IMG/VR virus record: IMGVR_UViG_3300004151_000006
Coordinates: 1 to 64,000 of that record
Length of the DNA stretch: 64,000 bases
Direction: 5' to 3' (one strand)
This document shows, one piece after another, positions 44 to 60,175 of the stretch. The stretch's first letter is position 1, and each line of letters begins with the position of its first letter. The notes beneath the pieces were generated by a model. The model ran no database searches and had not been told where the DNA came from. It saw only the letters and a list, made by a program, of their open reading frames with translations. The translations under genes were made by a program, and so were the position numbers.

Positions 44-98
44 ATATGTGATCCTCCTAGAGGTGATGGTATCTAAAGACTATAGGATGAAGAGAGGT

Positions 99-124
99 GG
101 GACAGTCCCCTTGGGGACTGTCCC
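99..124. terminator. GC-rich hairpin (12-bp arms)
   Basis: gggacagtcccc-tt-ggggactgtccc, downstream of minus gene 136..852. Confidence 0.7.
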
Positions 125-135
125 TGTTGACGCAT

Positions 136-852
136 TTACAGAGGCCAAGCCAGATCGATGTTGTCGAAGAAAGCTGCAGCCATAGCTTCAGCATTGGCTG
201 CAGTATCAATGAGCTTAGTGATCACCTTTTCACGTTCAAAACACGCCAGAGTACGGATAGCCATCACCTTAAAGAAATAGAGGATCTCAGTCTCAGTGAT
301 AGCACGATATGTACCTTCAGTAATCTTGAATTCCAATTCATCCATATATTGCTTGAATTCAGTATCTTCAGGTTCAAAGATCTTAAGATAGACTAAAGAG
401 ATCATAAGTTGAGCAATACGATTACGATCAGCTTCAGCAGACTGGATCACAGTACCATCGGAAAGCTTGACACCAGCATCTTCCACCACATGTTTCTTTT
501 CAGCCAAACGAGCAAACAATAAAGGTTTGATGATATCCATTGACTTAGCCACTAGTGTCCACTTAAATCGATACCCTTTAGCAGTGACTGTGATCTTTTC
601 TTCAGAGAAAGGTATCACCTGTTCAATAGTAGTCTCGAAATATTCATACTGATCTATACCATTTGTATCTTTAGCTGTCACATCAAAGATATCTTTATTC
701 TCCAAATACTTGGGAGGAAAATACTGGTTGTCAAAATAGTAGATACCCTGTTCTTCCAGGGACTTAGTATTGACAATGGTACCAGCTGTGCGCATGTCGT
801 CCAACTGATAGTCCGTGATGGGACGATTCTCATCTTTGATGAAAAAAGGCAT
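136..852 (-). CDS. tail fibre assembly protein, DUF4376-like
   Basis: C-terminal KHVVEDAGVKLSDGTVIQSAEADRNRI...CFERE pattern; AAGGAG RBS. Confidence 0.65.
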   Translation of the reverse strand: MPFFIKDENRPITDYQLDDMRTAGTIVNTKSLEEQGIYYFDNQYFPPKYLENKDIFDVTAKDTNGIDQYEYFETTIEQVIPFSEEKITVTAKGYRFKWTLVAKSMDIIKPLLFARLAEKKHVVEDAGVKLSDGTVIQSAEADRNRIAQLMISLVYLKIFEPEDTEFKQYMDELEFKITEGTYRAITETEILYFFKVMAIRTLACFEREKVITKLIDTAANAEAMAAAFFDNIDLAWPL

Positions 853-979
853 ATGCGATCTCCTTTGAGAGATATGTGATGGTGTAGCTAAGACTATAGA
901 ATGGTCATATTGTTGATTCAGTTTAGGCTATCACAGTATCACATGTTATAGGCCCTGTGCTATTAAAGGAGAGATCCCT

Positions 980-1807
980 ATGTCAGACACTTTTTCTGTC
1001 TTTTTTAATGCTATCATTGAACTTGGATTATCAGCCTATGCTATTAATATTGAACCCATTGATGATGGTATCTTAGATGTCTATACTATTAAAATAGATG
1101 AAACTTATATTTATTGGCATTGTCTCAATACAGAAAAAGCACTAGAATATCCAGCCTATGATGAAGATCATATCATACATCTCCTGACTATCCATATCTT
1201 ACCTATCAGATATAAAGAAGATATCGCTACACCAAGAGATATTTATATTGCGTATCAAAATACTGAGTATATCAGTGAACTCCATTTAGATGTACTTACA
1301 GATAATATCATTCAATCTATCGTGGATAGTTTACCTGATCTCAAATACAATCCAGATTATACTGTTTATGATGGCCAGAGTGTCAAAATGAATGAAATCA
1401 ATCAAGCTTATAATGAAGCATTCAATACTATTATTATTGACTATCCAGAACAAGAAGTAGCATCTTTCCCTTTACAGACAGATCAAGCTAAAGAGTACCT
1501 CTCTAATCCAAATGCAGAAGTCTCATTCTTAAGATTACTTTATGCTGGTCGTGTCAGTCGTGGATATACTGAGACATTGGAAGAACTCTGTAGAAAGATC
1601 TTATCTAAAGCTACACTGTTTGAACCTATCTCCGGATATCTCTCTGGTATCCGCCAAGCTATGGAAAAAGAAATAGAGGCTATCATCACTCGAGTAGAAT
1701 CCGGTGATATCACCACCTATCAAGGATACAGATTGTGTATGCAGATCTATGTGGAATATCCAATTCCCACTAGGGAGCAATTCTTACAGATGATCACACC
1801 TGTATGA
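980..1807 (+). CDS. tail fibre assembly chaperone-like protein
   Basis: YPEQEVASFPLQTDQAKEYL...LEELCRKILSKA...SGYLSGIRQAME resembles a common tail-fibre chaperone domain; AAGGAG RBS. Confidence 0.65.
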   Translation: MSDTFSVFFNAIIELGLSAYAINIEPIDDGILDVYTIKIDETYIYWHCLNTEKALEYPAYDEDHIIHLLTIHILPIRYKEDIATPRDIYIAYQNTEYISELHLDVLTDNIIQSIVDSLPDLKYNPDYTVYDGQSVKMNEINQAYNEAFNTIIIDYPEQEVASFPLQTDQAKEYLSNPNAEVSFLRLLYAGRVSRGYTETLEELCRKILSKATLFEPISGYLSGIRQAMEKEIEAIITRVESGDITTYQGYRLCMQIYVEYPIPTREQFLQMITPV

Positions 1808-6222: not shown

Positions 6223-6627
6223 TTATACCGACTGAGCCGTGTATCCGTGAGAACGAAGGAGTTCTAGGATGGTGGCTAATTGCTCAGATGGAGTGTCATA
6301 TATCCTGATATCGAATGACGTAGCTACGTCGACGACTTCCAGGGATGATGGATCGATCCACTCTCTGGCGAAAAAGCGCTTGCGTTTACTCTCGTAGTTC
6401 TCCAGAAGAGAAAGCTGCAAGAATGTCAACTTCTCAAGCACGGGCAGTTCTGGATGAAGTTTTACCACCTCTTTGTAGTAAGGGACAACATCCTCGGTGA
6501 GGGTGATTGCAGAATAGCGACAGATAGCTTCGATAGTACCAGACCAGAGCACATTATCATGCACACTGATGGACTTAAACCGAATGGTCTGTCCAATAGT
6601 TAGAGTAGATGGGTCTACTAGTGCCAT
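6223..6627 (-). CDS. conserved phiKZ-like hypothetical (possibly virion) protein
   Basis: 134 aa, GAGG RBS; WIDPSSLEVV and LELLRSHGY resemble a recalled phiKZ-like family. Confidence 0.6.
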   Translation of the reverse strand: MALVDPSTLTIGQTIRFKSISVHDNVLWSGTIEAICRYSAITLTEDVVPYYKEVVKLHPELPVLEKLTFLQLSLLENYESKRKRFFAREWIDPSSLEVVDVATSFDIRIYDTPSEQLATILELLRSHGYTAQSV

Positions 6628-6708
6628 GAGGTCATTACCTCAAATGCACCAGCATACTCACTTGATTTGTGATACTCCGGTTGATTCATGTCTATTCGAC
6701 CTTTTGCC

Positions 6709-8640
6709 CTAACTGGCATTTCCGGATACACTCTTCATATACACACCTCCAGGCACAATGACCTTATCTGTAGCCATCAGCTTGATGATGAGTTCACCCA
6801 CCCTACTTAAGATTTCATGATAAATCAACACAGGTTGAATCACTGGATACCCATATATCAATACATTATCATCCTCTTCAAGCTCAAGATACTCCAGGTA
6901 CATATCTAAGTCGTTCACGACACCTTCAGGTGCCAGAGCGTTGATATACTCCTGGGGATGCTTCGCTGTATTGGGGACTATAATATCATTTGTGTTGTAT
7001 ATATTTTCATCATATAAAGTCTTAATTACATGATTGATAGCTAACCTGAAATTCTCATGGATAAAGAGCATATATTTCTTATCCACTTCAGACATCACAA
7101 AGTTGTCATTTTCAATCTTTTCTTTAACGATCACAAGTACATCATTCATACTGAGTACACCATTAATAAAGAAGTTATTAGTGATAGATGCCATGGTAGC
7201 GCCAATGACATCTCTTACTACATGGTGTGCAGCTACATTGTCATGTGTATTACCACCAAGCTTTAAAGTGGGAAGATGAATACATGTCATATTTTTCATA
7301 GCTAAAGTAGCAATATCATGGACTGATTGATCTTTAGCATGACTAAGATCTGCTTGTTCAGCACGTAATTTCATATCTTCCAATAAGTCATCATAAAATT
7401 TACATTTACCTGGATGTTTAAAATTTGGATGAATGGTAGCTTTAGTAGCATCGTGTTCAAAGAGTCCATAGAATTCCATGACTGATCCATAGGTACGAAT
7501 CTTATTCACCATGAATGTGTAACTATCATCTAAAGGATTTTGTCTCTCAGTCTGAATATATGGAGTAGTGGATGCAATAGCATTAAGCACTGCAAGATCT
7601 ACTGCATACTGGGTAAATGTTTTATTTTTTGTAAAATACGAAGCTAGTGCAATGGGTTCTTTACGAATGGCATTAACCTCACCAACGGTACGTATAATTT
7701 CAGCTGGGATCTGTGCAGCAGTGAGTATACACAATGATTCATTTTCAGGATAAGCTTTGATATATCCAATCAATTTGCTCGTACAAGTATCACCAGTAGC
7801 CATACCATCGGGAATAGCTAACACTCTTACATTTTCTTTTACCCATTCAGTTTGCATGACTTCATTATAAAGATTGGCAGTTTGAAAATCAATATCTACG
7901 ACAAAATCATAAGGTTCTGTATGAACAGAATAATCAGTTTCATCTTCTACTTTTGAACTAAACCAAGTTTGATGTTCCCAAGCTTCTCTGGGGATACCTT
8001 CAAAGATAGTCTTCATACATTTAGATAAGATCAAATGTCCACCAGAAGAAGACATAGATTGCATAAAAGCAATGACACCAGCCCAATATTCTTCAGATTT
8101 ACCAGGATAAAGACTCATGAGTCTTTCAATAGAATAAGATTCATTATCGATAGTCTCCAACACAATCTTTACAAATTCTTTATAGAGTTTATTTTGATCT
8201 ACTGTAGTGAGTTTGAGTGCAGCGATCTTATCTTTGTTTTGTAATGCATTCTTAAGAAAGATAGCGGCTACTAGCATGGCAGTAGTGGTGCCATCTTTAG
8301 CTCTACGATCCACTTCTCTACCAATATAAGTGATGACATTTTTAAGATATGTTTGAATGATAGATGCAAACTCTACTTTTTCCAATATAGTAATACCATC
8401 TTTAGAGAATGTGGAAGGTGAAGCCAATGCAGCATTACCACTAGCGATTACATTCCGATCTACGATCATAGAAAATTGACTATGTGGACCACAATGTGGT
8501 GTGAGTAATTGATCAATATATTCCAGGGTATCTGTAAAGATCTGTTTGTTTTCTTCAAGTTTCATATCCACAACATTTTGCATATGCAAATGTGTGTTGA
8601 TGACGTTTTTACCAACGTGACCGTTGCCTGGATTGTTCAT
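6709..8640 (-). CDS. groEL: divergent GroEL-like chaperonin
   Basis: HCGP (TLGP), SKDGITIL (TKDGVTV), KDGTTTA (GDGTTTA), LKLGG...VRDVIGATMAS, VIQPV...KLMATDKVIV. Confidence 0.8.
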   Translation of the reverse strand: MNNPGNGHVGKNVINTHLHMQNVVDMKLEENKQIFTDTLEYIDQLLTPHCGPHSQFSMIVDRNVIASGNAALASPSTFSKDGITILEKVEFASIIQTYLKNVITYIGREVDRRAKDGTTTAMLVAAIFLKNALQNKDKIAALKLTTVDQNKLYKEFVKIVLETIDNESYSIERLMSLYPGKSEEYWAGVIAFMQSMSSSGGHLILSKCMKTIFEGIPREAWEHQTWFSSKVEDETDYSVHTEPYDFVVDIDFQTANLYNEVMQTEWVKENVRVLAIPDGMATGDTCTSKLIGYIKAYPENESLCILTAAQIPAEIIRTVGEVNAIRKEPIALASYFTKNKTFTQYAVDLAVLNAIASTTPYIQTERQNPLDDSYTFMVNKIRTYGSVMEFYGLFEHDATKATIHPNFKHPGKCKFYDDLLEDMKLRAEQADLSHAKDQSVHDIATLAMKNMTCIHLPTLKLGGNTHDNVAAHHVVRDVIGATMASITNNFFINGVLSMNDVLVIVKEKIENDNFVMSEVDKKYMLFIHENFRLAINHVIKTLYDENIYNTNDIIVPNTAKHPQEYINALAPEGVVNDLDMYLEYLELEEDDNVLIYGYPVIQPVLIYHEILSRVGELIIKLMATDKVIVPGGVYMKSVSGNAS

Positions 8641-11729: not shown

Positions 11730-11800
11730 GTTTATACTCCCACCAAGCATTGCTCTCTAATAAGATTAGAAGAAACTATAAGAAACAACACCTTTATGAT

Positions 11801-11826
11801 GTAGAGGAGGGCTAGCCCTCCTCTAC
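11801..11826. terminator. perfect 26-nt palindrome
   Basis: gtagaggagggct|agccctcctctac, downstream of 11837..12562. Confidence 0.7.
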
Positions 11827-11836
11827 TAAGAAATCA

Positions 11837-12562: not shown

Positions 12563-12619
12563 ATATCTCTCCCTTACATGTTAAAGTAAATCCTCTAAAA
12601 GATAAAGAATCAATATGAA

Positions 12620-12657
12620 AAACTACACCAGGCAGGTTTCCCCACCCGGTGTAGTTT
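12620..12657. terminator. imperfect hairpin with T-tract on minus strand
   Basis: aaactacacc...ggtgtagttt, downstream of 12665..13222. Confidence 0.55.
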
Positions 12658-13222: not shown

Positions 13223-13398
13223 GGTAGCTCTCCTTATGTTGAGTCTCATGATGAGACAATAATGTCATTGGACCTATACGATATTGCAACCATATTCTAA
13301 CCCTTTGGACCATTTTTTAGTTTAAAAGTAATCTCAATGATCATGTCATAGTCCCAATTGTGAAAATTTACCCATACCTATGGGAGGAAATAACACAT

Positions 13399-17898: not shown

Positions 17899-17979
17899 CA
17901 TTCGATTACAGGTATTATTCTTTTTTTTTATAAAAGCACTTATCTTATAGAAATTTATATCACAAGGAGGGAATATGTT

Positions 17980-22547: not shown

Positions 22548-22610
22548 ACTCCTTTGATACTTTAGTATCTATAAGATGTAAAAAATAAAAAATACAAATA
22601 GTCAAATAAA

Positions 22611-23537: not shown

Positions 23538-23658
23538 CGGATATTCTCCTTAATGCGTGCTTGTTGAATCAAATTTAGGAAAACCAAATACACTTCAGTA
23601 TAAAGGTCTCCTAGTGCCTATAAGATGTAAGCTTGGATCAACTGAAGCTTACAGAAAA

Positions 23659-23909: not shown

Positions 23910-25091
23910 ATGCTGACCAAGCATGCTATGTCTAGGCATGTGAAACCTTACATAGTACTTACTTGGGAGGACCTCTGTTTGATGGACGAAACACTACACA
24001 CACCTACAGTTACACAGGATATCTTAAACTTACGCTTTATTTCCGATGCTGCAGAAACGTATGTCTGTGATCAGGAGTACGTCTCAAAGTATGGCCAAGA
24101 TACAGTAAAAGAAGAAGACCTACTATTTGATCTATATGAAATAATCAAAAATGAATTAGTTGATCTGGGTATTGTTTATTGGGACACACAATATAATCCA
24201 TTAGAAGATTGGTATCAAGCACGTAGTCTTTATTATCTTAGAAAAGTATTTGATGAAGATGTATTGTTGATATTACTTAAACAAAATGATAGTGTAATAC
24301 CTGGTATTGAAACTATCATCTCTTCAGATGAAAGTGATGAAAGTGATATACATTTAGTATTAGAATTACTTAACAATACATTTATTGATCATCCTGATAT
24401 ATTGATGTGCATGGAATTTCAAGATAAGATCATCTCTACGGATAGATTCACTGAACATTTAAAAGCTATCATCTATACACATAAACATCTAGCTACCACC
24501 ACTATTGATGATCCTGAAATAGTGTTACCTTATATCAAACAAATTGAATTGGGCAGAGTGCGAGTAAAAGAAGCAGTAGAACGAATATTACTCAATCTTG
24601 ATGAGACTGGTAAAATCATGACCACTGATATAACAAATTGTGGAAGATCTAGTATTGATATGGAGCTACTTGATACTCTTCTTAGAAATTATGATTTGGA
24701 TAAACTTCAACCTAATGAGATTGGATATTATGCAGTTTTAGATAGACCTGATGAAAATATAGATAAGGTACAACTGGAATTTAAACAAAAATATATGGAT
24801 ATTCATCACAATAGAAGCCCACATCACATTGAGTATTGGAAATCACATGGAATATTAAACCTCACCAATACCAATATTCTAATGTTAATGGCACACATTT
24901 ATAATCCTTATTTAAATGGTGATGAATTTGTCACTGAATTTGCAAATATGAGAAAGATAGCTATCACTATATTCACTGAAGATCAGATTAAGATCTTAGA
25001 TACATATGGTCTGGTATTGATGGGTACTATGAGAGATCATGGTCAGGAGGATCAATATGGTCACATACCAGATCATTCCATCGTCTCATAA
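23910..25091 (+). CDS. hypothetical protein upstream of RNAP subunit
   Basis: 393-aa ORF; start uncertain. Confidence 0.75.
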   Translation: MLTKHAMSRHVKPYIVLTWEDLCLMDETLHTPTVTQDILNLRFISDAAETYVCDQEYVSKYGQDTVKEEDLLFDLYEIIKNELVDLGIVYWDTQYNPLEDWYQARSLYYLRKVFDEDVLLILLKQNDSVIPGIETIISSDESDESDIHLVLELLNNTFIDHPDILMCMEFQDKIISTDRFTEHLKAIIYTHKHLATTTIDDPEIVLPYIKQIELGRVRVKEAVERILLNLDETGKIMTTDITNCGRSSIDMELLDTLLRNYDLDKLQPNEIGYYAVLDRPDENIDKVQLEFKQKYMDIHHNRSPHHIEYWKSHGILNLTNTNILMLMAHIYNPYLNGDEFVTEFANMRKIAITIFTEDQIKILDTYGLVLMGTMRDHGQEDQYGHIPDHSIVS

Positions 25092-26811: not shown

Positions 26812-26840
26812 ATGGTATACTCTTCTAGGAGGACAGATTA

Positions 26841-28235: not shown

Positions 28236-28365
28236 AATAATTCTCCCATATATATTTAGGATATTTAAAATATCCATGTTTGCTTATGATTTCCCTCATA
28301 GCATGAGTCTTTAGATTTATCTGTATTTTAATATATGTGGTAGTTTTTCAATGAGTCTACAAGCA

Positions 28366-35826: not shown

Positions 35827-35887
35827 CATATCTCTTTATTTTCACAACTTTTTACTATGGTATAGCTTATTCAAATAGGAGATATGC

Positions 35888-43047: not shown

Positions 43048-43130
43048 AAACTATGCTATAGCTAGATCCACCGAATGTTGTCTCTAGCTCAATACTGAAT
43101 ATTCAACACTTCTGTTTAAGGAGCGCACAT

Positions 43131-43886: not shown

Positions 43887-43940
43887 TGATGTATCTTTCT
43901 AGTAGATTTTTTCTTATCTTATAGCTAAGGAGATACAACC

Positions 43941-47677: not shown

Positions 47678-49234
47678 ATGAAAGCTTATGCTAAGATTAT
47701 GGCTGGTGTAGAAGCCGCATTGCCCCCATTTGAGGATGATACCATATGTGAATATAGAAAAAATGAAATCAACCGTAGTTTAGAATATATTGATAATGTA
47801 TGGCATGAAGCTATGCGCTATAGTAAAAATGAAATCAAATATCTTGGATATACAGTATTATCTCCTGAACATAGATTAGATGAGCTTAATGATCCAGCAT
47901 TTAAACGTGGGTATAATATTCAATGGTCAGAACTCATCTTAGTGAGATTTGATTTTTCATTTGAAAATGAAAGAATCTCAGTTCATATGCATTTACCGTA
48001 TTATCGTGATGGTGCTATCACTATTGATGATACTAAATATTATCTTCAATTGGCTATCATTGATAAAATCATTTCACGTATTCCAAATGGTATCATCATT
48101 AAGGTAATGCGTTCACCTATTAAATTCTTTAGACATGAACAGTTTGGCTATGTCACCACTAAAGGTAAATCTTTTATTGAATCTATCATTACTACACAGA
48201 TACATTGGAAGACTAGAAAACGTACAAAGAAAGATCCACAGACTGCACTCCTTTTATATCCTTTAGGTAAATTTGGATTAGCTGAAACATTAGCTAGATT
48301 CGGTATCACATATGACGATTTGTGTTTTGTAGAAGAAGAAGATCTCATGGTGGCCGAAGATGTAGTCTTTGTAAAGATCAAGGAAAAATTGTATCTTAAA
48401 AGTAAATTACATATGTTTACTGGTGAAACTGGACGTATTATTGCTTCACTTATTTATTGTTTAAAATTTTATCGTGATGCCAATATTCAAAATGTATATG
48501 ATACTGTTGGTACTATTTGGAAGATTATTTTAGGTAAAAGTATCCATGGTCATCAAACTCCTGGCCCATTAGCACATAATCATACTGAAAAACATTTTGC
48601 TAGTTTATCCACATATTTAGATTATCTAACACAACATGAACTCACTACCATAGGTGTTTGTGTGGATGATATTTATGATCTTCTTATTGTTGTATTTAAA
48701 AATATTGATAAATGGATAGCTAATTATCGACCAAATAATCTATATGATAAAAAGCTTGGTGTACTTGAACTTATTTTAAGCCCTATTGTAGAAGCTATCT
48801 TTAATAAAATGTATAGTAATCCCAATGATCAGAAGCTCACTATCAAAAGTGTGAGAAATATGCTTAGAGTACCTAGCAAGAAGATAGCTGCTCTTTATAA
48901 ATGTGGGGCTATTCAAGGTGCCACTATCATCAATGATAATGAATTACTCACCATTCAAGGTAAGAAAATCATTCAACCGATTGATGCAGAAAAATCAGGA
49001 AAGAAAGGTAAAGGGAAGCGTCAAGCAAATATCATCACTGATCCAACATATGCATTTGATACATCACAAGTAGTGATTGAATCTATTCTTTCTATACCAG
49101 CTTCAAATCCAGGTGCAGCAGGCTTTATCAATCCCTATGCAAAAATTGATAATAGAGGTAATCTTCTTTGTCCAGAATATGCACGAGATGATCTTGATGA
49201 TCTTAAGCGATACTTACCTTCCCGCAGTGGGTAA
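47678..49234 (+). CDS. non-virion RNA polymerase beta N-terminal subunit (phiKZ gp123-like)
   Basis: EYIDNVW, LPYYRDGAITIDDTKYY, HFASLSTYLD, NLYDKKLGVLELIL, GFINPY. Confidence 0.78.
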   Translation: MKAYAKIMAGVEAALPPFEDDTICEYRKNEINRSLEYIDNVWHEAMRYSKNEIKYLGYTVLSPEHRLDELNDPAFKRGYNIQWSELILVRFDFSFENERISVHMHLPYYRDGAITIDDTKYYLQLAIIDKIISRIPNGIIIKVMRSPIKFFRHEQFGYVTTKGKSFIESIITTQIHWKTRKRTKKDPQTALLLYPLGKFGLAETLARFGITYDDLCFVEEEDLMVAEDVVFVKIKEKLYLKSKLHMFTGETGRIIASLIYCLKFYRDANIQNVYDTVGTIWKIILGKSIHGHQTPGPLAHNHTEKHFASLSTYLDYLTQHELTTIGVCVDDIYDLLIVVFKNIDKWIANYRPNNLYDKKLGVLELILSPIVEAIFNKMYSNPNDQKLTIKSVRNMLRVPSKKIAALYKCGAIQGATIINDNELLTIQGKKIIQPIDAEKSGKKGKGKRQANIITDPTYAFDTSQVVIESILSIPASNPGAAGFINPYAKIDNRGNLLCPEYARDDLDDLKRYLPSRSG

Positions 49235-51011: not shown

Positions 51012-51866
51012 TTAATCTGTAGAGATGGTATCTCCTGTGACATATATTGAACCCTCTGTGAATAAAAAGCGTCTTGTATCCGTAGCTGAAGGATGTGACA
51101 TATCAGTACCATTCCAAGTAGTCACAGCACTCATGTAAGTACACATACTTTCAGTGTAACTAAACTTTATACCCTGATAATTAAACGCTTCTACTAAATT
51201 ATCTTCACCTGCATAAACACCAAGTTCAGAAAGTACACCATATCTGAGATCACCATCATAAAGTACATTGATAGCTTCAACCACTTCTTCACCAGTGATA
51301 GAAGCTTTACCAATAGCACAAGTAGTGATCTCACTAAGTGTGGCATCTACCAATCCAGATGTTGAAGGTTTCTTACGTGTAGGTCGAAGATTAGTAGCAT
51401 CTAAAATATATGCTGATTCTTTTTGTGTAACCGGATCAGTATAGATAAATCCAACTTCATCAGTAAATTCAATCTTCTTAAGATAATAACAATAATACTT
51501 GACACCACCAAAAGTCTGGAGTACACGCATACGATATTTAGCACGTTCATTGGGAGTCAGTAGACTATCTTCATCTTCAGGGAGACATCTAAATGGAATA
51601 GGTTTAGCTAAATTCATTTCATCAGTTACGGGCTTATATGTTTCAGAAAGATCAGTATCTGATACATTATATTTACCACCAATACCAATACCAAAATATT
51701 GAATCTTAGGGATAGCTACTGGCTGTACTGCTTGATATACATTATAAAGAGAATTGATAGTACAATCCATATCAGGATTAAAAGTAACAGGAAGTCTTCC
51801 ACATAAACCAAGTTTGGATTCAATGAGTGTCTTAGTGGTATGTACCACCATACGAGAACTATCCAT
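51012..51866 (-). CDS. virion structural protein (phiKZ-like)
   Basis: YFGIGIGG, PIPFR, YRMRV...YYLKKI; in structural block. Confidence 0.7.
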   Translation of the reverse strand: MDSSRMVVHTTKTLIESKLGLCGRLPVTFNPDMDCTINSLYNVYQAVQPVAIPKIQYFGIGIGGKYNVSDTDLSETYKPVTDEMNLAKPIPFRCLPEDEDSLLTPNERAKYRMRVLQTFGGVKYYCYYLKKIEFTDEVGFIYTDPVTQKESAYILDATNLRPTRKKPSTSGLVDATLSEITTCAIGKASITGEEVVEAINVLYDGDLRYGVLSELGVYAGEDNLVEAFNYQGIKFSYTESMCTYMSAVTTWNGTDMSHPSATDTRRFLFTEGSIYVTGDTISTD

Positions 51867-53985
51867 CTGTCGACTCTCCTAACAGGTATATGTGCATACC
51901 TGATCTAAAGTTAGTACAAGACTTAATTGCTTGGACTGTAGAAATGAGTTCTTTCTGAGCTATTGATAAATTTGATCGTATTTCAGATTTCATATTAATT
52001 GTACGATTGATATCTGTAAATAATTTGATTTCATTTAAAGTATGAGGAATTGCATCTATCATTAATTCTTGTGGTATCTTCAATGTACCACTATTGTGAT
52101 ATTCTGGGTCACAATGACACTTCATATTAGTAATAACCACATATTCATTTTTATCTCTTGGGGTATCTAAAAATACCACATTATAACTACATAATTGAAC
52201 AAAGAGTTTTCTTAATGTACTATAAAGTTTTTCTAAATATTCAGTAGAACCAACAAGATCAGACATACCTTTAGTGATTGGAAATACTGCCACCAATAAG
52301 GCATTTAATAATTTAGAATAATCTGCTTCATTCTCATTGTAATAATTAATAAGATTGTAATATTCAATATGTCTATCATCATGAAACCATGTAGTATAAT
52401 CAGTATAATCTGATAACTTCAATGTATGTGTTTGTTTATTAAGAAGTGTGGTATAGAGTACTTTCATAGCCCGCACTGCTACATCATTACCTTCACTAAA
52501 AGTATATCTCACATCTCTAAGTAATGCACTGAACAATGTGGTTATATAATCTGAAAAAGTATCTTGATTTCTAAATGTTTCATTAGTATAATGAATGGTA
52601 TTCATGATCTTATCAACATCAATAAATTTAGATAACCTATATTTAACATAAAGATAAGTAAACTCTTTAGGTAACGTTTGTGGATACTTTTTATGATAAA
52701 CTATATTTGTAGTAAATTTGGTCGGTAATAGATCTGGTGTCTCTTTCTGTAATTTACATGCTGCGTAATAGATCAAAGCTAATGCATCTTCCATAGAAAG
52801 TTGCAATAATGTATTTGTGATTGGATCTATCACATTAATGTCATAATCTATCTGACCTTCAATATAGCGATAAATTGTTGTTTCAAATAAAAAATTAGAT
52901 AAAAGATCTTCCCATCTCGTATAAATGGAATTTTTTTTCATTTCTAGAAATTTAGTGGGCATCATGTTGACACGTGTCTTTTGATAATCAGATGTTAATT
53001 TATCCACATAAGCAGTAGAAATATCATGATCTAAGTTGCTATCATAAATACGAAGATTCATTTCTTCAATAGTAGTAGCATCTTTATATTGGACATCATC
53101 CGATACTTTCATGGAAGTGATTTCTGGAATAGTGTCACAAGTAATTGTGCTATTTTTAGTCTGTTGTACAAGATCTTTGCCATAGAGTGTAATAGCCATT
53201 TCACTCAATATATTATCTGCCAATACCTGCATGGTATTATGTTTACCCTGATTTTTATATACCCATTTTAAATTTCTATACAACCATAAAGATTGTTTAT
53301 TGGTCAATACATCCCTATAATCCCCAATTCCTTTGGAGGTAAGATACTCCCATACGTGAAATGGATGTACATGCGGGGTACCTATGTTATACACTCTTTT
53401 ACTGAATAGTATGTTTGGTAAAGCTTGCCAAAGCATATAATAAAATGCTTGTGGATAAAGATCTTCAAATACATATTCTGTAGTCCACCATCTCACTTTG
53501 ACATAATTAAGAAATTCTCTTAATGTATCAAGTAAACTTTCTCTTTCATATTCATATAACAAAGTATCATCATAAGCAAGTAATGATAATTCATCTGCAT
53601 CAATACAAGTTTGCACATCCTTGACTGGATATAAAATAGATCTGATGAGATGTGTTTGATGTGGATACTTTTTACATAAAAGAGTATGTTCTTTACTCGG
53701 TATCTTAAAAAATTCAAAGAGTCTTGGTCTTGTAATAGCTAATGATTTTTCAAATAAAATCTCTTTATCATCTTCTTTAGAATAAATATACATTGGGGTA
53801 TCGTATGATTGGTATTCTCCGCACAAATTATGATAATATGGATTCCAATCTGCATTAATATCAGTATATCCATTTGCTAACATGAGTTGTTCACCATATA
53901 TATATGAGAATGGTGAAAATTTGATAGTACATGTTCTTAAGAAATTAAACACCTCATCCCGATATATTGTTACATGACCGGCCAT
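51859..53985 (-). CDS. virion structural protein (phiKZ gp128-like)
   Basis: YYHNLCGEY, HPFHVWEYL, LWLYRN, QLCSY; divergent from portal. Confidence 0.7.
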   Translation of the reverse strand: MAGHVTIYRDEVFNFLRTCTIKFSPFSYIYGEQLMLANGYTDINADWNPYYHNLCGEYQSYDTPMYIYSKEDDKEILFEKSLAITRPRLFEFFKIPSKEHTLLCKKYPHQTHLIRSILYPVKDVQTCIDADELSLLAYDDTLLYEYERESLLDTLREFLNYVKVRWWTTEYVFEDLYPQAFYYMLWQALPNILFSKRVYNIGTPHVHPFHVWEYLTSKGIGDYRDVLTNKQSLWLYRNLKWVYKNQGKHNTMQVLADNILSEMAITLYGKDLVQQTKNSTITCDTIPEITSMKVSDDVQYKDATTIEEMNLRIYDSNLDHDISTAYVDKLTSDYQKTRVNMMPTKFLEMKKNSIYTRWEDLLSNFLFETTIYRYIEGQIDYDINVIDPITNTLLQLSMEDALALIYYAACKLQKETPDLLPTKFTTNIVYHKKYPQTLPKEFTYLYVKYRLSKFIDVDKIMNTIHYTNETFRNQDTFSDYITTLFSALLRDVRYTFSEGNDVAVRAMKVLYTTLLNKQTHTLKLSDYTDYTTWFHDDRHIEYYNLINYYNENEADYSKLLNALLVAVFPITKGMSDLVGSTEYLEKLYSTLRKLFVQLCSYNVVFLDTPRDKNEYVVITNMKCHCDPEYHNSGTLKIPQELMIDAIPHTLNEIKLFTDINRTINMKSEIRSNLSIAQKELISTVQAIKSCTNFRSGMHIYLLGESTDG

Positions 53986-54038
53986 GGCATCTCTCTTCTC
54001 CTTGTTTAAATGATTTTATCTTCTTAGGAGGATATCCT

Positions 54039-56828
54039 GTGGCAGATAGCGCCAAAATAGTACCCAGCGCATTTACACAATTAGCTGGAGTAATCGATGA
54101 AAAACCCCGTGTCACAAATATTAATAATAAAGAATTAAACAATACTCCAGTATCGAAATATAGTCATAATGAAATTCTCAGTGTAATCAGAAATACTTAT
54201 GTTAGTGATAAAGAAGTACCAAATCCGAATTTAGCCAATGCCGAAGGACTCATATCATACTTTCTACCGATACATGAACAAATTGGACAAGTACTTCTTG
54301 ATACTGAGAAAATGAAGAAGTTAGCACCTGAAATCAATCAAGCTAAACTCATTCGTATCTCTTCTATCATGTCACCCAATGATATGCAAGATGGTAAATT
54401 TATTTTTGACATAGACCAAATACCTGGACTCACAGAAGATGCTCGTAAAAAGATCACAGACCTGCTTAGTGAATTTTTTAATGAGACTGAAAAGTTAGCT
54501 AAGAAAGCAGCCAAATGGTCTGGTGATGCGCTCTATGGTCCAGGAGCTAGTCCAGTATTGTTACTCCCATCAAGTTATCAAAAAGCTATGCATGAAGATG
54601 GTAAACATATTATCGGTAATCGAACTGATGATAAAGTGATTGGGAATACTTCATTATCTGTTGAATCAATCAAATTTACAAAACAAGAATATATGAAGAA
54701 ATTAGAAAATACTTTTATCTACACTGATAACACTGTTGGTATTGAACATTGGGCACTTACTATTCAGAAAGATACTGATCATAAATCAAAATGGGTAGAT
54801 GACATCTATGATAATTTGCCCACCACTTATTTATTAGATAAAGAAAAAGATGAACTTCGTGTTGGTATTGAACAAATCACTGTAAATTTTATCAAACAAA
54901 TTGAAGCAGGTGATATTATTAAATTAACTGAAAATCCAGAGATCATCAAATTTGCTACTGAATATAGAAAAAATACAAGTAAACAATTGGAAAATAAATT
55001 ACAAAATCATTTTAACATGCAAATGTCATATAAACAAGAAGATCTAATTAGTTTAAATAAATATATTAATACTAAAGAAGTAGATGACACACATCCACTC
55101 ATGTTGGATATCCCAGCTGAATCTGTGATACCAATCTGTGTACCGAGTAATGAACGTGAACATCTCGGATATTTTATATTACTTGACGAATCAGGTCAAC
55201 CAATTAAGGCTGATGAAAGCAGAATCTCTAATTCTAATGGTTGGGGTGGTGGGCCACAAGCTGCCTTTCAAGCTATGTTCGGTAGTAGTGAACGTAATAT
55301 ATTTCAATCTCCCAATTTCAAAAACTATGAAGAGATGACAGTACGTAAAATCTTTAATGGCCTGTTAGATGAATATCTTAAATCCAAGCTACGTGGTATT
55401 GGACATGAAGATGTCACTATTGATAAAACCAATGCTATCATGACCACCATGCTGTATAGGTTACTTGAACATAAACGTACTCGTATTTTATTTATCCCTT
55501 CATTTTTGATGTCATATATTTGTTTTGATTATCGAAAAAATGGTACAGGTAAATCTTTATTAGAAGATATTCATTATCTTCTTTCATTACGTGTGACCTT
55601 TCAAGTAGCTGCACTTATGGGTATGGCTAAAGATGCAATCAATCATCGTACTTTAAATCTCACTTTTGCAAATCAAGAAACCAATCCTCGAGCACTCATG
55701 GATCAATTGGTCAATATGTTTGTTGAAAAAGAACGTATGCCATTTAGTTTAGATCCCACTGAAGTATCTCGAGGTATAGCTAGAAATGCTATCTCTGTAG
55801 CACCAAAAAACTTACCAGGATTAGATGAGTTTGGTATTGAACGTGTCAATGATGCTGGTGGTGGTGGCAATAAACCAGATACTGAATTGCTAGATACTAT
55901 CACTAATATGTTAGTCACGGCATTGGGTGTACCTTACAGTGCACTCAATCAATTGGCTGAACAAGAATATGCTAAATCTATCGTTACTACTAATTTATTT
56001 TATTCCAAACAAATCAGACAAGATCAGGATATCCTTTGCCTATTTGCTGAGCATCTTGTTAAACAATATATAAAATTTTCTCCTAAATTACAAACTAAAA
56101 TTCAAGCTATTATCAAAGAGTTTTTAAAAGATCCAGATGATACATCTGAAGAAGCTGAAAAGAAAAATGAAAAACGTGGTACAGTACCTTCTACCCAACA
56201 TGCTCCTGAACTAGAAAATGATGTGATCACCAAACTCAACATGATTACAAAGCTAGTCATTGATAGTATCAGACTTAAATTACCCACACCAAATATTGCT
56301 CAAGATAAAGCACAATATGCTGAAATTACAGAATATATAAATGCACTTGATCAGTTCCTTAATGTCAAATATGCCAATGAATTAGTACCTGCTGATAACA
56401 TGGAGGCTACTACTGCACTCAATGTAATCAAAGCTACTATTAAGAGTATTGCAATTGATGATTTCTTTAGTAAGGTTGGTGTAGTCAATACCATGGATCT
56501 TCCTTCCATCGAAGAATTTATTGCTAAACATGATGCCACTGATGTACTACAGATATTGATGAACTTTAATAAAGGACTCAAAGATGTAGCTACTAAATTT
56601 GGGAGTGCTGATCCAATGGGCATGGGTGGTAGCGATATGAGTATGATGGGAGATGACATGATGGGTGGTATGGGTGATGAAGGTATGATGGGAGATGAAC
56701 CACCTATGGATATGAATATGGATACTGGACCAGAGATGATGCCAGATGAAGTGCCCACATCCACTAAAGAAGAAAATAAAAACATGGATGGTACTTTTAA
56801 TATTCCTGAAGATAATAAGCCAGTGTAG
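54039..56828 (+). CDS. portal protein (phiKZ gp129-like)
   Basis: PEINQA..IRISSIMSP, IPAESVIP..P...HLGYFILLDESGQP, DYRKNGTGKSLLE; AGGAGG + GTG 54039. Confidence 0.75.
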   Translation: MADSAKIVPSAFTQLAGVIDEKPRVTNINNKELNNTPVSKYSHNEILSVIRNTYVSDKEVPNPNLANAEGLISYFLPIHEQIGQVLLDTEKMKKLAPEINQAKLIRISSIMSPNDMQDGKFIFDIDQIPGLTEDARKKITDLLSEFFNETEKLAKKAAKWSGDALYGPGASPVLLLPSSYQKAMHEDGKHIIGNRTDDKVIGNTSLSVESIKFTKQEYMKKLENTFIYTDNTVGIEHWALTIQKDTDHKSKWVDDIYDNLPTTYLLDKEKDELRVGIEQITVNFIKQIEAGDIIKLTENPEIIKFATEYRKNTSKQLENKLQNHFNMQMSYKQEDLISLNKYINTKEVDDTHPLMLDIPAESVIPICVPSNEREHLGYFILLDESGQPIKADESRISNSNGWGGGPQAAFQAMFGSSERNIFQSPNFKNYEEMTVRKIFNGLLDEYLKSKLRGIGHEDVTIDKTNAIMTTMLYRLLEHKRTRILFIPSFLMSYICFDYRKNGTGKSLLEDIHYLLSLRVTFQVAALMGMAKDAINHRTLNLTFANQETNPRALMDQLVNMFVEKERMPFSLDPTEVSRGIARNAISVAPKNLPGLDEFGIERVNDAGGGGNKPDTELLDTITNMLVTALGVPYSALNQLAEQEYAKSIVTTNLFYSKQIRQDQDILCLFAEHLVKQYIKFSPKLQTKIQAIIKEFLKDPDDTSEEAEKKNEKRGTVPSTQHAPELENDVITKLNMITKLVIDSIRLKLPTPNIAQDKAQYAEITEYINALDQFLNVKYANELVPADNMEATTALNVIKATIKSIAIDDFFSKVGVVNTMDLPSIEEFIAKHDATDVLQILMNFNKGLKDVATKFGSADPMGMGGSDMSMMGDDMMGGMGDEGMMGDEPPMDMNMDTGPEMMPDEVPTSTKEENKNMDGTFNIPEDNKPV

Positions 56829-56867: not shown

Positions 56868-56892
56868 ATAGATCAATTAGATGTGATGTTGG

Positions 56893-57975
56893 TTAAACGA
56901 GAGTTCCACCAGTGGCTTCAGTCGTATCCGTAGCCACGGTGGTAGTACCACGATAAGACTCACCATCAGCAGCAGCCGGGGCACTCTCAGTCAAGAGCTG
57001 ACCAGGTCCCTGGTAGTACTGATTGGTGGGATTGATTCCCCGATAGCCCTGGAAGGCCGTAGCATTGCCAGGAGCAGACACGGTATCTGGATTGTATCCA
57101 CCACCGTTGACTTCATCGGAGATGCCGTAGTTCTTGATCACCGGCTGAATGGCTTCATCGAAGCCAGTCTTGCCGAGGATACCAGGCAGGGCCAGGTTGT
57201 AGTTGACCTGATGCATACGCAGCATGACAGCCACCTGGTAGGCCAGCTCACGAATGTTTTCGTTGTGCTGGACGATGCCGGTGTACTGGATAGTGCGTTC
57301 CTGCAAGTTAGTCGTGTTGATGACACGCTGCAACTGCAGGGGACCAATATCCGTCGGGAAGACGTTCGTGTAGAACGCCGCATCGATGATGCGATCCGGA
57401 AGCATGGTGGCATCGTACTGGATCGCCAGGAAGCTCATTGACCAAGCTGTCATGACCCAGGGCGGAATCTCACCGATGTCGGTGTTCATCGAGAGGGCCG
57501 AAGCATTGGTATCCGGATGTTGCATATCGAAGATCCACCGACGGTGCAGGTTCCAGCAGAGGTTGCCGGTCACTTCGGTGTATTCGATAGACGGTGAGAT
57601 CTGACCGCGAGTGCTGCGTGTCGGGATCTTGAGTGTCTGGCCATCATGGCCAATGGGAGTTTCAGCAGTCTCAACTGCATAGTTAAACTCAATACCAGTC
57701 ACAGACTTAGCATGAGTCTCGACCATGGACTTGAGCATCATCTGGAGATCAGGGATCCCATCCCACATGGAAGGGGTATGAAGCACCACAATGACTGCCG
57801 GAGTGAATGCCAACGGAGTGGCCGCATCCAACTTGGTATACTTTACACCAGTCCCAAGTTGACCACCCGTGAACAGGTTACCAACAGCTCCACGCTGTCC
57901 GATGCCAAGTCCGGTGATGTTACCGATCAGAGCATCCGTCATGGAGTTAGGCGCAGCAATAGGTTTACCGTTCAT
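56893..57975 (-). CDS. tail tube protein (phiKZ gp30-like)
   Basis: LKSMVETHAKSVTGI, PIGHDGQ, NVFP; downstream of sheath; GC3-rich. Confidence 0.78.
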   Translation of the reverse strand: MNGKPIAAPNSMTDALIGNITGLGIGQRGAVGNLFTGGQLGTGVKYTKLDAATPLAFTPAVIVVLHTPSMWDGIPDLQMMLKSMVETHAKSVTGIEFNYAVETAETPIGHDGQTLKIPTRSTRGQISPSIEYTEVTGNLCWNLHRRWIFDMQHPDTNASALSMNTDIGEIPPWVMTAWSMSFLAIQYDATMLPDRIIDAAFYTNVFPTDIGPLQLQRVINTTNLQERTIQYTGIVQHNENIRELAYQVAVMLRMHQVNYNLALPGILGKTGFDEAIQPVIKNYGISDEVNGGGYNPDTVSAPGNATAFQGYRGINPTNQYYQGPGQLLTESAPAAADGESYRGTTTVATDTTEATGGTLV

Positions 57976-57978
57976 AGA

Positions 57979-60012
57979 TTAAGCCTCCTCGGGGGTGTAG
58001 CCACTGCGCCAACAAACGATATCCACATCCCAAATGCGGTTCGGGGCATGGCCAATCAGATTGACAGTACCGTGGGTAGTATAACCGATCTTTTGTTCTT
58101 CATCAGTACGATAGAAATTCACTGAGACACCATATGTACCATTGAGCATATGCTGCATATCTTTCAGCGTAGTACGCTTGGCAGCAGCAGCCAGGATCTC
58201 AAACGGGAGTTCCTTACCGGCATGGACCGCCCAGTTGTACCGCACGATGTGCTTCGTATAGACCACGGCATCAGTGAAGATAGCCGAAGACAGAACCGAA
58301 GTGTCGTAACGATAAACAGTGCGGATATCCGGCCAGTGTACCCGATGACGATCGTAGAACTGGACATAGTTGAGACCATAGTCCCAGCTATCCTGCTTAT
58401 GATCGACCTTGCAGGGGAACCAGTTCATCTTGGTGACCTTGAAGAGCTTGACCTGCGAAAGCGGGAGACCCTTCGGCATGCCATCCAAGTAGTTCTTGGA
58501 CTGGTGATATGCACGCTTGGTCATGGCTTCCAACGTCAACGGAAGGAAACCCTCATACCTGGTATTGTCTACCAGATACCCAGCTTGCTGGTAGATCTCC
58601 ACCCTGCAGCATTCCGTACCATGGATGATAGATTCCGGCTGCAAGAGAGCTGCACTGTGTACAGCCATACCAACAGACATATCTTCATCCTTGGTATTCA
58701 TTCGATCCCGCTGACAATCCTGGGTAGACAAGATCACCTTGATGTCATCCCGCACAGCCAGGAAGCTCAAGAAAGCTTTCTTAGTTTCCAGCAAGACACC
58801 CGTATCCCAGACATGGGTAATGGGGAATCGAGCAGAATCAGAGATTTCCGGGAACAGATCATCTTTCAACCATTGACGAGTCAACGTTTCAATTGAAGTA
58901 TCAGTAATATCACCATCAGACCCACCAGACAAATAGATAATATAATTCTGATTAAGGACAACACTATTGGGATCAGTAGCATCCATTTCGATTTCCACAT
59001 GATCAAGATACGTACCATCAGCTTTACGACCAGTGAACAGATCGATCATATAGGGATTAGTTTCAGTCACATTAGGTTCAACATTAAGAACCGCAGTAGC
59101 TACAGCTTTATAATAGTTATCATAAGTGTGTACAGCAAAAGGAAGTTTAGAGAGCTGCATAGTCGAAGACCAGAACAAATCATCCAGTACATAGGTGAGT
59201 GCTAAATTCTTATCTAAAGTCTTATCAATAGCATCAGGACGAATACTGGCACGCACAAATGAATCACCATATGAAGAACGTACAGGAGAAACAGTATCCT
59301 GACCATACGTCTTTTTAACTACATAATACTGAAACTCCAAAGCACCAATACGGGATACCTGAGCTGCATCCACATTGATCGGATCATAATGAATCTTATA
59401 TCCAAGTTCATCACCATATTCACCAGGATACAAAGCACGATGTGCCAACATTGGGAAAGTCTGAGTGGATACACCAGCTTCTTCTACAGTGACAGGTCTC
59501 AATGAATTAAGTGTAACATCCTGTGCAATGATATCTTTAGTCCATTTCAATTTATATCCAGGTTCCTTAATGATATCACCAGAAGTAGCATCAGTGAGCG
59601 GAATCTTATTTCCATCAGTATCTAAAACAAAGCCACCGAATTCATCTTTCTTATACTGGGTAATTTGTGCAGGAGTGATTTTCAATTTCAGTGCAGAAGA
59701 AGAATACTTAGCAGTATCTGGAGCCAGTCGGACATAGAAACAGCCCTGACGTTCAAAAAGATGCTGCATATAAACAGATTCACGAGAATGATATTTTGAA
59801 TACTTGTCAAACGTACCTTCACCATACATCCATTTTGCAGAATCATAGGTCCCATTCCACGTAGGAAATCCAATGGGGCCTTGCATAGCACGCCCAAAAA
59901 ACACGGGACGATGTAATGGGAGTTCTTCCCGATACAGCGGCGTGTAAATGGACTTGTCCAACACGTTCATTTGCGCATGCGGAAACGTGTTTAAGATAGA
60001 CGTCGTACCCAT
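57979..60012 (-). CDS. tail sheath protein (phiKZ gp29-like)
   Basis: PLHRPVF..A..GP, YGEGTFD, YLSGGSDG, WDTG, PESIIHGT..CR, RTVY.YDTSVL; GAAGGAG before ATG 60012. Confidence 0.85.
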   Translation of the reverse strand: MGTTSILNTFPHAQMNVLDKSIYTPLYREELPLHRPVFFGRAMQGPIGFPTWNGTYDSAKWMYGEGTFDKYSKYHSRESVYMQHLFERQGCFYVRLAPDTAKYSSSALKLKITPAQITQYKKDEFGGFVLDTDGNKIPLTDATSGDIIKEPGYKLKWTKDIIAQDVTLNSLRPVTVEEAGVSTQTFPMLAHRALYPGEYGDELGYKIHYDPINVDAAQVSRIGALEFQYYVVKKTYGQDTVSPVRSSYGDSFVRASIRPDAIDKTLDKNLALTYVLDDLFWSSTMQLSKLPFAVHTYDNYYKAVATAVLNVEPNVTETNPYMIDLFTGRKADGTYLDHVEIEMDATDPNSVVLNQNYIIYLSGGSDGDITDTSIETLTRQWLKDDLFPEISDSARFPITHVWDTGVLLETKKAFLSFLAVRDDIKVILSTQDCQRDRMNTKDEDMSVGMAVHSAALLQPESIIHGTECCRVEIYQQAGYLVDNTRYEGFLPLTLEAMTKRAYHQSKNYLDGMPKGLPLSQVKLFKVTKMNWFPCKVDHKQDSWDYGLNYVQFYDRHRVHWPDIRTVYRYDTSVLSSAIFTDAVVYTKHIVRYNWAVHAGKELPFEILAAAAKRTTLKDMQHMLNGTYGVSVNFYRTDEEQKIGYTTHGTVNLIGHAPNRIWDVDIVCWRSGYTPEEA

Positions 60013-60175
60013 GTGTGTGCTCCTTCCTGAAGGAAAAATGCTCAACGCTGCCGGGGCATCGTATAGGTTAACGATTTTGGAGCAATCTTGCCTATAAGAT
60101 TGCCTGATAGCAACTTACTGAGGAATATAAAACTCAGTATACCAAATATACCCTTTTACCTAAAAGGATCCACAT

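Follow-up and report, generated by a model that had tools for sequence, protein, structure and literature searches.

A nine-base motif, ATNNTATAG, recurs between the genes of an uncultured giant phage (IMG/VR record IMGVR_UViG_3300004151_000006) and raises the question of whether a short, AT-rich word can serve as a promoter for the phage's own RNA polymerase. A preliminary description of the first 64,000 nucleotides of this record (hereafter the window) had listed 12 such sites, each pointing at the next gene start, and had proposed a variant of the phiKZ late promoter. Here, we tested whether this observation holds, extended it to the whole 286,688-bp genome and its relatives, and asked which polymerase most probably reads the motif. 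Our data suggest that it is very probably the promoter of the non-virion RNA polymerase (nvRNAP) for mostly particle-building genes, although start sites are inferred, as no RNA data exist for this phage, which is known only from freshwater metagenomes.

Placement and orientation of the motif

All 12 listed sites are exact matches on the strands given in the preliminary description, and ATCTTATAG indeed occurs five times in the window (Table 1). The word is not over-represented as such, since the window holds 22 matches compared to 27.5 +/- 5.0 in dinucleotide shuffles. The signal lies instead in the placement: all 12 sites fall into the 10.5% of the window that is intergenic, whereas the other 10 matches lie in coding sequence (binomial p=4e-7), and each of the 12 is co-oriented with the next start codon at a distance of 16-109 nt. 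Both divergent structural junctions (852/980 and 60012/60176) carry one copy per strand. Of the three near-matches mentioned in the preliminary description, only ATGGTATAC fits the wider core ATNNTATR, while TTCTTATAG and ATGTCATAG each break an invariant position and remain doubtful.

Table 1. Motif sites and related features in the window. Distance is the number of nucleotides to the next start codon; G001, G002 and G003 are metagenomic relatives.
Position	Strand	Sequence	Distance (nt)	Feature	Observations
80..88	-	ATCCTATAG	36	Predicted promoter for a gene starting at 43(-) and cut by the contig start	Just after a strong hairpin at 97-125; same promoter and 5' leader recur at 213804(+), same motif and gene start at 286593(+)
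894..902	-	ATTCTATAG	41	Predicted promoter of 136-852(-), a DUF4376 protein	Divergent junction
943..951	+	ATGTTATAG	28	Predicted promoter of 980-1807(+)	Head of a 9-gene + cluster
11776	-	TTCTTATAG		Doubtful near-match	
13274..13282	-	ATCGTATAG	51	Predicted promoter at the head of the minus-strand cluster 6223-13222	
13343	+	ATGTCATAG		Doubtful near-match	
17942..17950	+	ATCTTATAG	29	Predicted promoter of 17980-18522(+)	GC hairpin and T-run upstream
22569..22577	-	ATCTTATAG	30	Predicted promoter of 21897-22538(-)	Hairpin of -32.6 kcal/mol upstream; orthologues in G001 and G002 carry ATTTTATAG and ATGGTATAG
23618..23626	-	ATCTTATAG	80	Predicted promoter of 22686-23537(-)	Strand of the gene settled by homology to G001
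23923..23930	+	ATGCTATG		TATG-form site of the same class, heading 23982-25091(+)	Orthologues in G001 and G002 carry ATCTTATAG and ATGGTATAG
26812..26820	+	ATGGTATAC	about 20	Near-match upstream of 26841-27605(+); weaker candidate	No matching site upstream of the orthologues
28297..28304	-	ATGCTATG		TATG-form site heading 27666-28277(-)	Orthologues in G001 and G002 carry ATGTTATAG and ATGCTATAG
35857..35865	+	ATGGTATAG	22	Predicted promoter of 35888-38167(+), a topoisomerase II subunit A-like gene	G001 orthologue has ATCGTATGT
43053..43061	+	ATGCTATAG	69	Predicted promoter of 43131-43844(+), an SWM-repeat protein	
43916..43924	+	ATCTTATAG	16	Predicted promoter of 43941-44630(+), a virion RNAP subunit homologous to phiKZ gp149	G001 orthologue has ATCTTATAG; phiKZ gp149 has ATGGTATG 25 nt upstream
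47678..49234	+			Gene for the nvRNAP beta-like subunit, a homologue of phiKZ gp123	In a unit headed by the early-type motif at 46220
60058..60066	+	ATCGTATAG	109	Predicted promoter of 60176-61213(+), a PhiKZ_VTX-like gene	Orthologous sites in G001, G002 and G003
60092..60100	-	ATCTTATAG	79	Predicted promoter of the tail sheath gene 57979-60012(-)	Orthologous sites in L001, G001 and G003

The same picture emerges for the whole genome, in which 35 of 63 copies sit in the 10.7% that is intergenic, against 6.7 expected (p=3e-18). Seventeen of these lie in divergent gaps, which amount to only about 4 kb in total, and none in convergent gaps, while tandem gaps hold 14 sense and 2 antisense copies. 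Two sites at the contig ends that were scored as having no target do face gene starts, which are cut by the contig ends. The median distance to the start codon is 32 nt, and many tandem sites are positioned 15-45 nt after a strong, terminator-like GC hairpin. Even a deliberately conservative control, in which each intergenic piece was dinucleotide-shuffled, yielded 17.6 +/- 4.3 copies with a maximum of 32 in 300 shuffles, compared to the 35 observed. [quoted passage not shown]

The placement is also specific for the exact word, which is 56% intergenic. Words that change one invariant position are only 7-20% intergenic, and changing the final G gives 27%, a value inflated by ATNNTATAT words that partly overlap the early-promoter core. 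In addition, only the N2 spacing between AT and TAT is special among N0-N6.

Target genes and conservation in relatives

The genome belongs to a distant phiKZ-like jumbo phage that encodes homologues of subunits of both RNAPs, and the predicted targets of the motif are mostly virion genes, including the MCP (two tandem copies), the sheath, the VTX-like protein, the virion RNAP gp149- and gp178-like subunits and three virion structural families (phrog_2926, 3181 and 3293). The sheath, virion RNAP subunit and gyrA-like targets of the preliminary description are confirmed. However, the latter, a topoisomerase II subunit A, is not a virion gene, and since timing is inferred from gene content only, "middle/late, non-virion-RNAP class" is a safer designation than "late". 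A few credible junctions (51859-53985 / 54039-56828) lack the motif here, although G001 has it.

In contrast, a separate 35-40-nt AT-rich motif (attCAt-N9-ttttAAATATATATTAY-N5-TGA), with blocks spaced like the conserved -10/-20/-30 blocks of the phiKZ early promoter, has 32 intergenic copies, occurs only on the + strand and heads the units that carry the homologues of the nvRNAP subunits gp55, gp71, gp74 and gp123. A gp68-like sigma-like subunit, described in the literature as the most divergent, was not found by BLASTP at 1e-4. Of the 24 minus-strand gene clusters, 17 are headed by ATNNTATR.

Three metagenomic relatives, whose sheath proteins are 43-54% identical, show the same intergenic and oriented enrichment: 21 of 37 copies in G001, 18 of 25 in G002 and 4 of 5 in G003. 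Orthologous genes share the element (odds ratio 12.7, p=1.7e-9), although the pairs are not independent, because one gene of the genome studied here can count up to three times. Interestingly, TATAG and TATG forms replace each other upstream of orthologous genes. The nine-base word of the preliminary description is the main form of the wider core ATNNTATR.

Counter-selection inside genes

This core is 2.5-5-fold depleted in coding sequence on both strands. Relative to codon-shuffle expectation it is at 0.40 in this genome, 0.21-0.29 in G001 and G002 (the two larger relatives), 0.21-0.25 in phiKZ, 0.20 in 201phi2-1 and 0.30 in SPN3US, whereas T4 (0.85) and PBS1 (0.99) show no such depletion. 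Among the 16 dinucleotides at the first two positions, tested in this genome and in phiKZ, only AT is clearly depleted in both the TATG and the TATA form.

A probable promoter of the non-virion RNA polymerase

Taken together, we consider it likely that ATNNTATAG is the main form of the promoter used by the multisubunit nvRNAP for middle/late, mostly virion, genes. In the proposed programme, the injected virion RNAP reads the long AT-rich early promoters, whose units include the genes for the nvRNAP subunits, and the assembled nvRNAP then starts at sites with the core A(-7)T(-6)NNT(-3)A(-2)T(-1)R(+1) to drive the capsid, sheath, virion-RNAP and other particle genes on both strands. The enzyme that reads the motif, the start at the purine after TAT and the timing are inferred.

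[quoted passage not shown] Both share a TAT-purine element without -35/-10 architecture in front of virion genes, and orthologous genes carry one form or the other, as seen for gp149 and the sheath junction. On the other hand, all copies of the usual nine-base word here have A rather than G after TAT, followed by G, and the AT two bases upstream of TAT is invariant, while the literature describes only a four-base consensus and calls its specificity puzzling (PMC4666361, PMC12809450). Our counts suggest that the AT also matters in phiKZ. In that phage, ATNNTATG is 29 of 71 intergenic (25 pointing at the downstream gene) and ATNNTATAG 13 of 26 (12 so oriented). However, the phiKZ model promoter P119L has T, not A, at -7 (PMC7618050), and the extended word is therefore not obligatory in phiKZ. 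For 201phi2-1, whose early, middle and late promoters were mapped by ONT-cappable-seq (PMC11512511), a three-class programme with late motifs mainly before structural genes is also described; this phage mostly uses the TATG form, and ATNNTATG is 25 of 51 intergenic.

In this context, it is about as likely as not that the true core promoter of the phiKZ-type nvRNAP across the lineage, including phiKZ itself, is the seven-specified-base word ATNNTATR and not TATG alone. According to this hypothesis, the AT at -7/-6, which lies near the upstream edge of the transcription bubble (strand separation at -8 in the phiKZ promoter-analogue structure), would be an unrecognised determinant that helps to explain how so short a start-site element can be specific, and the word would be so active that it is purged from both strands of coding DNA. 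The gp123 residues that sandwich T-3/A-2 (H185, H331, Y406) align with identical residues in the homologue found here, whereas F151, which stacks on G+1, aligns with I/V, but at 24% identity this alignment is weak evidence. The A-or-G choice at +1 in different lineages, set against changes in this pocket, offers a natural specificity series for this unusual polymerase. While middle and late promoters of jumbo phages are said not to be predictable from sequence (PMC7598289), a late-type class is read here directly from an uncultured phage genome and its relatives, which allows transcription-unit maps for metagenomic phiKZ-like phages.

The word differs from the other promoter classes considered. 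The phiKZ middle promoter, AAanTTACc centred near -24, has no counterpart at the motif, as there are no conserved positions between -30 and -3 in the 35 intergenic sites. The late promoters of AR9/PBS1 are likewise short and belong to a related non-virion multisubunit RNAP, but they consist of a different, uracil-dependent word (AACA-N6-TW) that is read on the template strand by a different subunit, gp226, and AACA-N6-T(A/G), the form tested, is not enriched between genes here (38 against 62.5 expected).

Alternative explanations

Placement and orientation would fit the binding site of a phage-encoded activator or repressor next to promoters as well as a promoter itself, and in phiKZ TATG alone is not sufficient for late-promoter function (PMC4666361). 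Nevertheless, we regard this as unlikely, because the word contains the TAT-purine element that phiKZ nvRNAP itself binds and starts at (PMC12809450), lacks dyad symmetry, and is strongly avoided inside genes on both strands in every phiKZ-type genome tested, which fits spurious initiation better than factor binding. About as improbable is an action at the RNA level, as a 5'-leader element or endoribonuclease processing site in polycistronic transcripts. The motif does lie in 5' leaders upstream of ribosome-binding sites, and without RNA data processing is not excluded; but the equal depletion on sense and antisense strands of coding sequence points to a DNA-level signal, the motif heads minus-strand clusters in divergent gaps, where no upstream transcript on that strand is expected, it follows terminator-like hairpins, and the homologous phiKZ element gives primary starts in vitro (PMC4666361).

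It is very unlikely that the motif is the early promoter of the injected virion RNAP, even though the motifs found bioinformatically in jumbo phages are reported to be the early ones (PMC7598289), since the separate long AT-rich motif occupies this role and ATNNTATAG, which has no conserved flanks, heads virion genes instead. Equally remote is a host sigma-factor or T7-like single-subunit RNAP promoter, although the core is TATA-like and some copies read CTATAG, resembling the -5 to +1 part of T7/SP6 promoters and overlapping the presumed start. Nothing is conserved upstream of the AT, neither a -35 element nor a 17-23-nt T7-type specificity region, TTGACA-N16-18-TATA(A/G)T has 1 hit in the genome and none in intergenic DNA, and TATAAT is not enriched between genes. 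Furthermore, the word is shared with phages of Pseudomonas and Salmonella, and no PF00940 RNAP was found in the genome, although the same search gave no match in the control genomes either. Finally, chance matches of a short AT-rich word, which the low overall count in the window might suggest, are refuted by the intergenic and orientation statistics, the lack of enrichment of one-base variants, the conservation in relatives and at orthologues, and the depletion in coding sequence.

The contig and its closest sequences

The window belongs to a single contig of 286,688 bp (in the following G000) with 34.9% G+C. Matches to PHROG and Pfam profiles point to phiKZ-specific families, namely sheath, tube, VTX, major capsid protein and split RNAP subunits, and tblastn places the RNAP pieces at about 24-41% identity to cultured phiKZ-like phages. 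It is therefore a distant, uncultured phiKZ-like jumbo phage. A search of the phage collection for near-identical DNA found nothing, and the same holds true for a tblastn search with one ORF and for a scan of viral contigs with a single protein. An alignment-based scan was needed. The contig is represented in four freshwater metagenome DNA runs and in no RNA run. Comparison of these runs over window positions 17935-23934 showed identical sequence and consequently provides neither variation nor expression evidence. For naming the target genes, Pfam was of limited use, whereas PHROGs named more of them.

Placement and orientation of the motif

All 12 sites listed in the preliminary description are exact. 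The word as such is not over-represented in the window, as we found 22 hits in comparison to 27.5 +/- 5.0 in shuffled sequences. However, these 12 sites are exactly the hits that fall in the 10.5% of the window that is intergenic (p=4e-7), and each of them points at the next start codon 16-109 nt away. Genome-wide there are 63 copies, of which 35 are intergenic, against 6.7 expected (p=3e-18). Seventeen copies lie in divergent gaps, which cover only about 4 kb, and none in convergent gaps, while tandem gaps contain 14 sense and 2 antisense copies. The median distance to the start codon is 32 nt. Dinucleotide shuffling of each intergenic piece gave 17.6 +/- 4.3 copies in contrast to the 35 observed.

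Words that change one invariant position are only 7-20% intergenic, compared with 56% for the exact word. Changing the final G gives 27%, but this class includes ATNNTATAT words, some of which are the reverse complement of the early-promoter core. Outside the word, only a C bias at the two preceding positions and a T/C bias two bases after it are visible. Besides, most tandem-gap sites lie 15-45 nt downstream of a strong GC-rich hairpin, which is the usual terminator-then-promoter layout.

A second motif in the early role

Analysis of k-mer enrichment in upstream regions gave two signals in addition to the ribosome-binding site: TCTTATAG and ATATATTA(Y). The second is the core of a motif of 35-40 nt, attCAt-N9-ttttAAATATATATTAY-N5-TGA, with 32 intergenic copies in the genome, all on the + strand. 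This matches the published description of phiKZ-type early promoters, which are long, AT-rich and conserved near -10, -20 and -30 (PMC7598289, PMC11512511). Interestingly, homologues of the non-virion RNAP subunits gp123, gp55, gp71 and gp74 lie in + strand units headed by this early-type motif, whereas the homologues of the virion RNAP subunits gp149 and gp178 sit directly behind ATNNTATAG. [quoted passage not shown] Such matches account for part of the intergenic ATNNTATAT count (54 in the genome) and should not be counted as late-type sites.

Target genes

Apart from these two virion RNAP genes, ATNNTATAG precedes the major capsid protein gene with two tandem copies (identified by Pfam PhiKZ_MCP), the sheath gene and the VTX-like gene, as well as three 'virion structural protein' families and a giant protein of 2,591 residues. 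The clear non-virion target is a topoisomerase II subunit A-like gene. Together with a topoisomerase II large-subunit-like gene, which follows an early-type promoter, it has no phiKZ counterpart detectable by BLASTP. Seventeen of 24 minus-strand gene clusters are headed by ATNNTATR, and several of the other seven are short, doubtful ORFs.

For the major capsid protein gene and for a second gene at window 22686-23537(-), long open frames exist on both strands over the same DNA. In both cases the minus-strand gene is the real one, based on the Pfam match for the capsid protein and on homology for the other. These stretches and the region at 56-60 kb have 44-46% G+C in comparison to 35% for the genome.

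Conservation in metagenomic relatives

The sheath protein has many metagenomic relatives, and three IMG/VR contigs were analysed whole: G001 (156 kb, sheath 54% identical), G002 (153 kb, 43%) and G003 (47 kb, 43%).

Copies of the motif in three metagenomic relatives
Contig	ATNNTATAG copies	Intergenic	Co-oriented with downstream gene
G001	37	21	18
G002	25	18	17
G003	5	4	3

The two free positions drift between lineages, with CT in the present genome and GG or GC in G002, but the seven fixed bases do not change. Among 136 reciprocal-best-hit gene pairs, which are not fully independent, the presence of ATNNTATR upstream agrees between genomes (odds ratio 12.7, p=1.7e-9), and TATAG and TATG forms replace each other at orthologues. 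The sheath/VTX junction keeps one site per strand in L001, a further sequence compared, and in G001. In the present genome the two sites at this junction face each other, so that the 5' ends of the two divergent transcripts would overlap by about 30 nt, and by more in phiKZ. In contrast, other divergent junctions are arranged back to back. The divergent junction between the phrog_3222 gene and the phrog_3004 virion gene is only 53 nt long and has no ATNNTATR, although the orthologous junction in G001 has ATCCTATAG and ATCGTATAC.

The wider core and phiKZ

Between AT and TAT only the two-base spacing is special, and this applies to the present genome, to G001 and G002, and to phiKZ. To assess counter-selection within genes, we compared the counts of ATNNTATR in coding sequence on both strands with codon-order shuffles of each gene, as a preceding comparison with the reversed word was uninformative.

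Observed/expected counts of ATNNTATR in coding sequence, both strands, against codon-order shuffles of each gene
Genome	Observed/expected
This genome	0.40
G001	0.21-0.29
G002	0.22-0.26
phiKZ	0.21-0.25
201phi2-1	0.20
SPN3US	0.30
T4 (control)	0.85
PBS1 (control)	0.99

The controls ATNNTATY and other spacings stay near 1 in this genome and in G001 (0.89-1.11). In phiKZ and G002 the ATNNTATY control also stays near 1, but the other spacings fall to 0.7-1.0, and in the two higher-GC phages other spacings are also somewhat depleted (0.5-0.66). Of the 16 dinucleotides at the first two positions, only AT is clearly depleted in both forms, TATG and TATA, as tested in this genome and in phiKZ.

In phiKZ, ATNNTATG is intergenic in 29 of 71 cases (25 pointing at the downstream gene) and ATNNTATAG in 13 of 26 (12 so oriented). 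Moreover, phiKZ gp149 has ATGGTATG 25 nt upstream, where its orthologue in our genome has ATCTTATAG. Convincing TATG-form sites are also present in this genome, for example a back-to-back pair and two sites within the window.

Mechanistic implications and alternative explanations

Published work on phiKZ has shown that T(-3)ATG(+1) is necessary for transcription by the purified five-subunit non-virion RNAP, with the start at the G (PMC4666361), that the four bases are bound on the non-template strand in a pocket of gp123, and that strand separation begins near -8 (PMC12809450). By homology, we infer that the purine after TAT is +1 in the present genome (A, followed by G), which places the invariant AT at -7/-6, next to the upstream edge of the bubble. 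An alignment of the gp123 homologues keeps the residues that sandwich T-3/A-2 (H185, H331, Y406), but replaces F151, which stacks on G+1, with I or V. At 24% identity this is only suggestive. In addition, the phiKZ model promoter P119L reads ATTGCTATG and has T at -7, so the extended word is not obligatory there (PMC7618050).

Among the alternative explanations, a separate DNA-binding factor cannot be excluded without biochemistry. A signal at the RNA level fits poorly with the equal depletion on both strands and with sites heading minus-strand clusters in divergent gaps. An early role, depending on the virion RNAP, is taken by the other motif. Host sigma-70 or T7-like promoters are not supported, since nothing is conserved upstream, there is no -35/-10 pattern, and no single-subunit RNAP match was found, although in the latter search the control was silent as well. 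Chance is excluded by the placement, conservation and depletion tests.

The kind of element inferred here, a start-site promoter of a phiKZ-type non-virion RNAP, is already known. To our knowledge, and with the restriction that neither the original phiKZ promoter paper (Ceyssens et al. 2014) nor the supplementary start-site tables of the phiKZ ONT-cappable-seq study (PMC10914365) could be included in the comparison, no paper has reported the findings made here, and searches for TATAG in jumbo or phiKZ-like phages gave no paper either. New are the nine-base form with A at the presumed +1, its conservation across an uncultured freshwater clade, the fact that it can be found from sequence alone, and the evidence that AT at -7/-6 belongs to the core in phiKZ, 201phi2-1 and SPN3US as well.

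Contig ends and further features

The last 60 nt of the contig are the reverse complement of the first 60 nt. Three paralogous gene starts each carry ATCCTATAG, and the copies at 43(-) and 213849(+) also share an almost identical 5' leader. IMG/VR classes the record as having inverted terminal repeats and CheckV as 100% complete, but it may instead be an assembly break inside a repeated gene. Three tRNA genes lie in a gene-poor stretch at 41.7-42.7 kb of the window, without an identified promoter. Outside the window, about 1 kb with no credible ORF directly follows an early-type promoter and is possibly a non-coding RNA or a missed gene.

Coordinates of the features discussed in the text (G000, the whole genome)
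Sequence	Position	Strand	Feature
Window	15690-15698	+	Early-type motif, core ATATATTAY
Window	18582-18590	+	Early-type motif, core ATATATTAY; minus strand matches ATNNTATR
Window	28365-28373	+	Early-type motif, core ATATATTAY
Window	31287-31295	+	Early-type motif, core ATATATTAY; minus strand matches ATNNTATR
Window	46220-46228	+	Early-type motif, core ATATATTAY; minus strand matches ATNNTATR
Window	47678-49234	+	gp123 homologue (non-virion RNAP)
G000	175465-177057	+	gp55 homologue (non-virion RNAP)
G000	193346-195592	+	gp71 homologue (non-virion RNAP)
G000	195546-197501	+	gp74 homologue (non-virion RNAP)
Window	43941-44630		gp149 homologue (virion RNAP)
G000	229897-233916		gp178 homologue (virion RNAP)
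G000	138579-140924	-	Major capsid protein gene
G000	138567-140858	+	Open frame opposite the major capsid protein gene
Window	22686-23537	-	Gene supported by homology
Window	22644-23567	+	Open frame opposite the gene at 22686-23537
Window	31414-33918		Topoisomerase II large-subunit-like gene
Window	35888-38167		Topoisomerase II subunit A-like gene
Window	23923	+	TATG-form site
Window	28297	-	TATG-form site
G000	124312/124335	-/+	TATG-form pair, back to back
Window	60058-60100		Sheath/VTX-like junction, sites face each other
G001	108737-108771		Sheath/VTX-like junction, sites face each other
phiKZ	20160-20300		Sheath/VTX-like junction, sites face each other
Window	894/943		Divergent junction, back to back
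G000	213752/213804		Divergent junction, back to back
G000	270533/270553		Divergent junction, back to back
Window	53986-54038		Divergent junction without ATNNTATR
Window	51859-53985	-	phrog_3222 gene
Window	54039-56828	+	phrog_3004 virion gene
Window	1-60		First 60 nt of the contig
G000	286629-286688		Last 60 nt of the contig, reverse complement of the first 60 nt
G000	213803-213890		Related stretch with paralogous gene start
Window	43	-	Paralogous gene start
G000	213849	+	Paralogous gene start
G000	286656	+	Paralogous gene start
Window	42196-42439	+	tRNA genes Met-CAT, Arg-TCT and Val-CAC
G000	85449		Early-type promoter
G000	85397-86417		About 1 kb with no credible ORF
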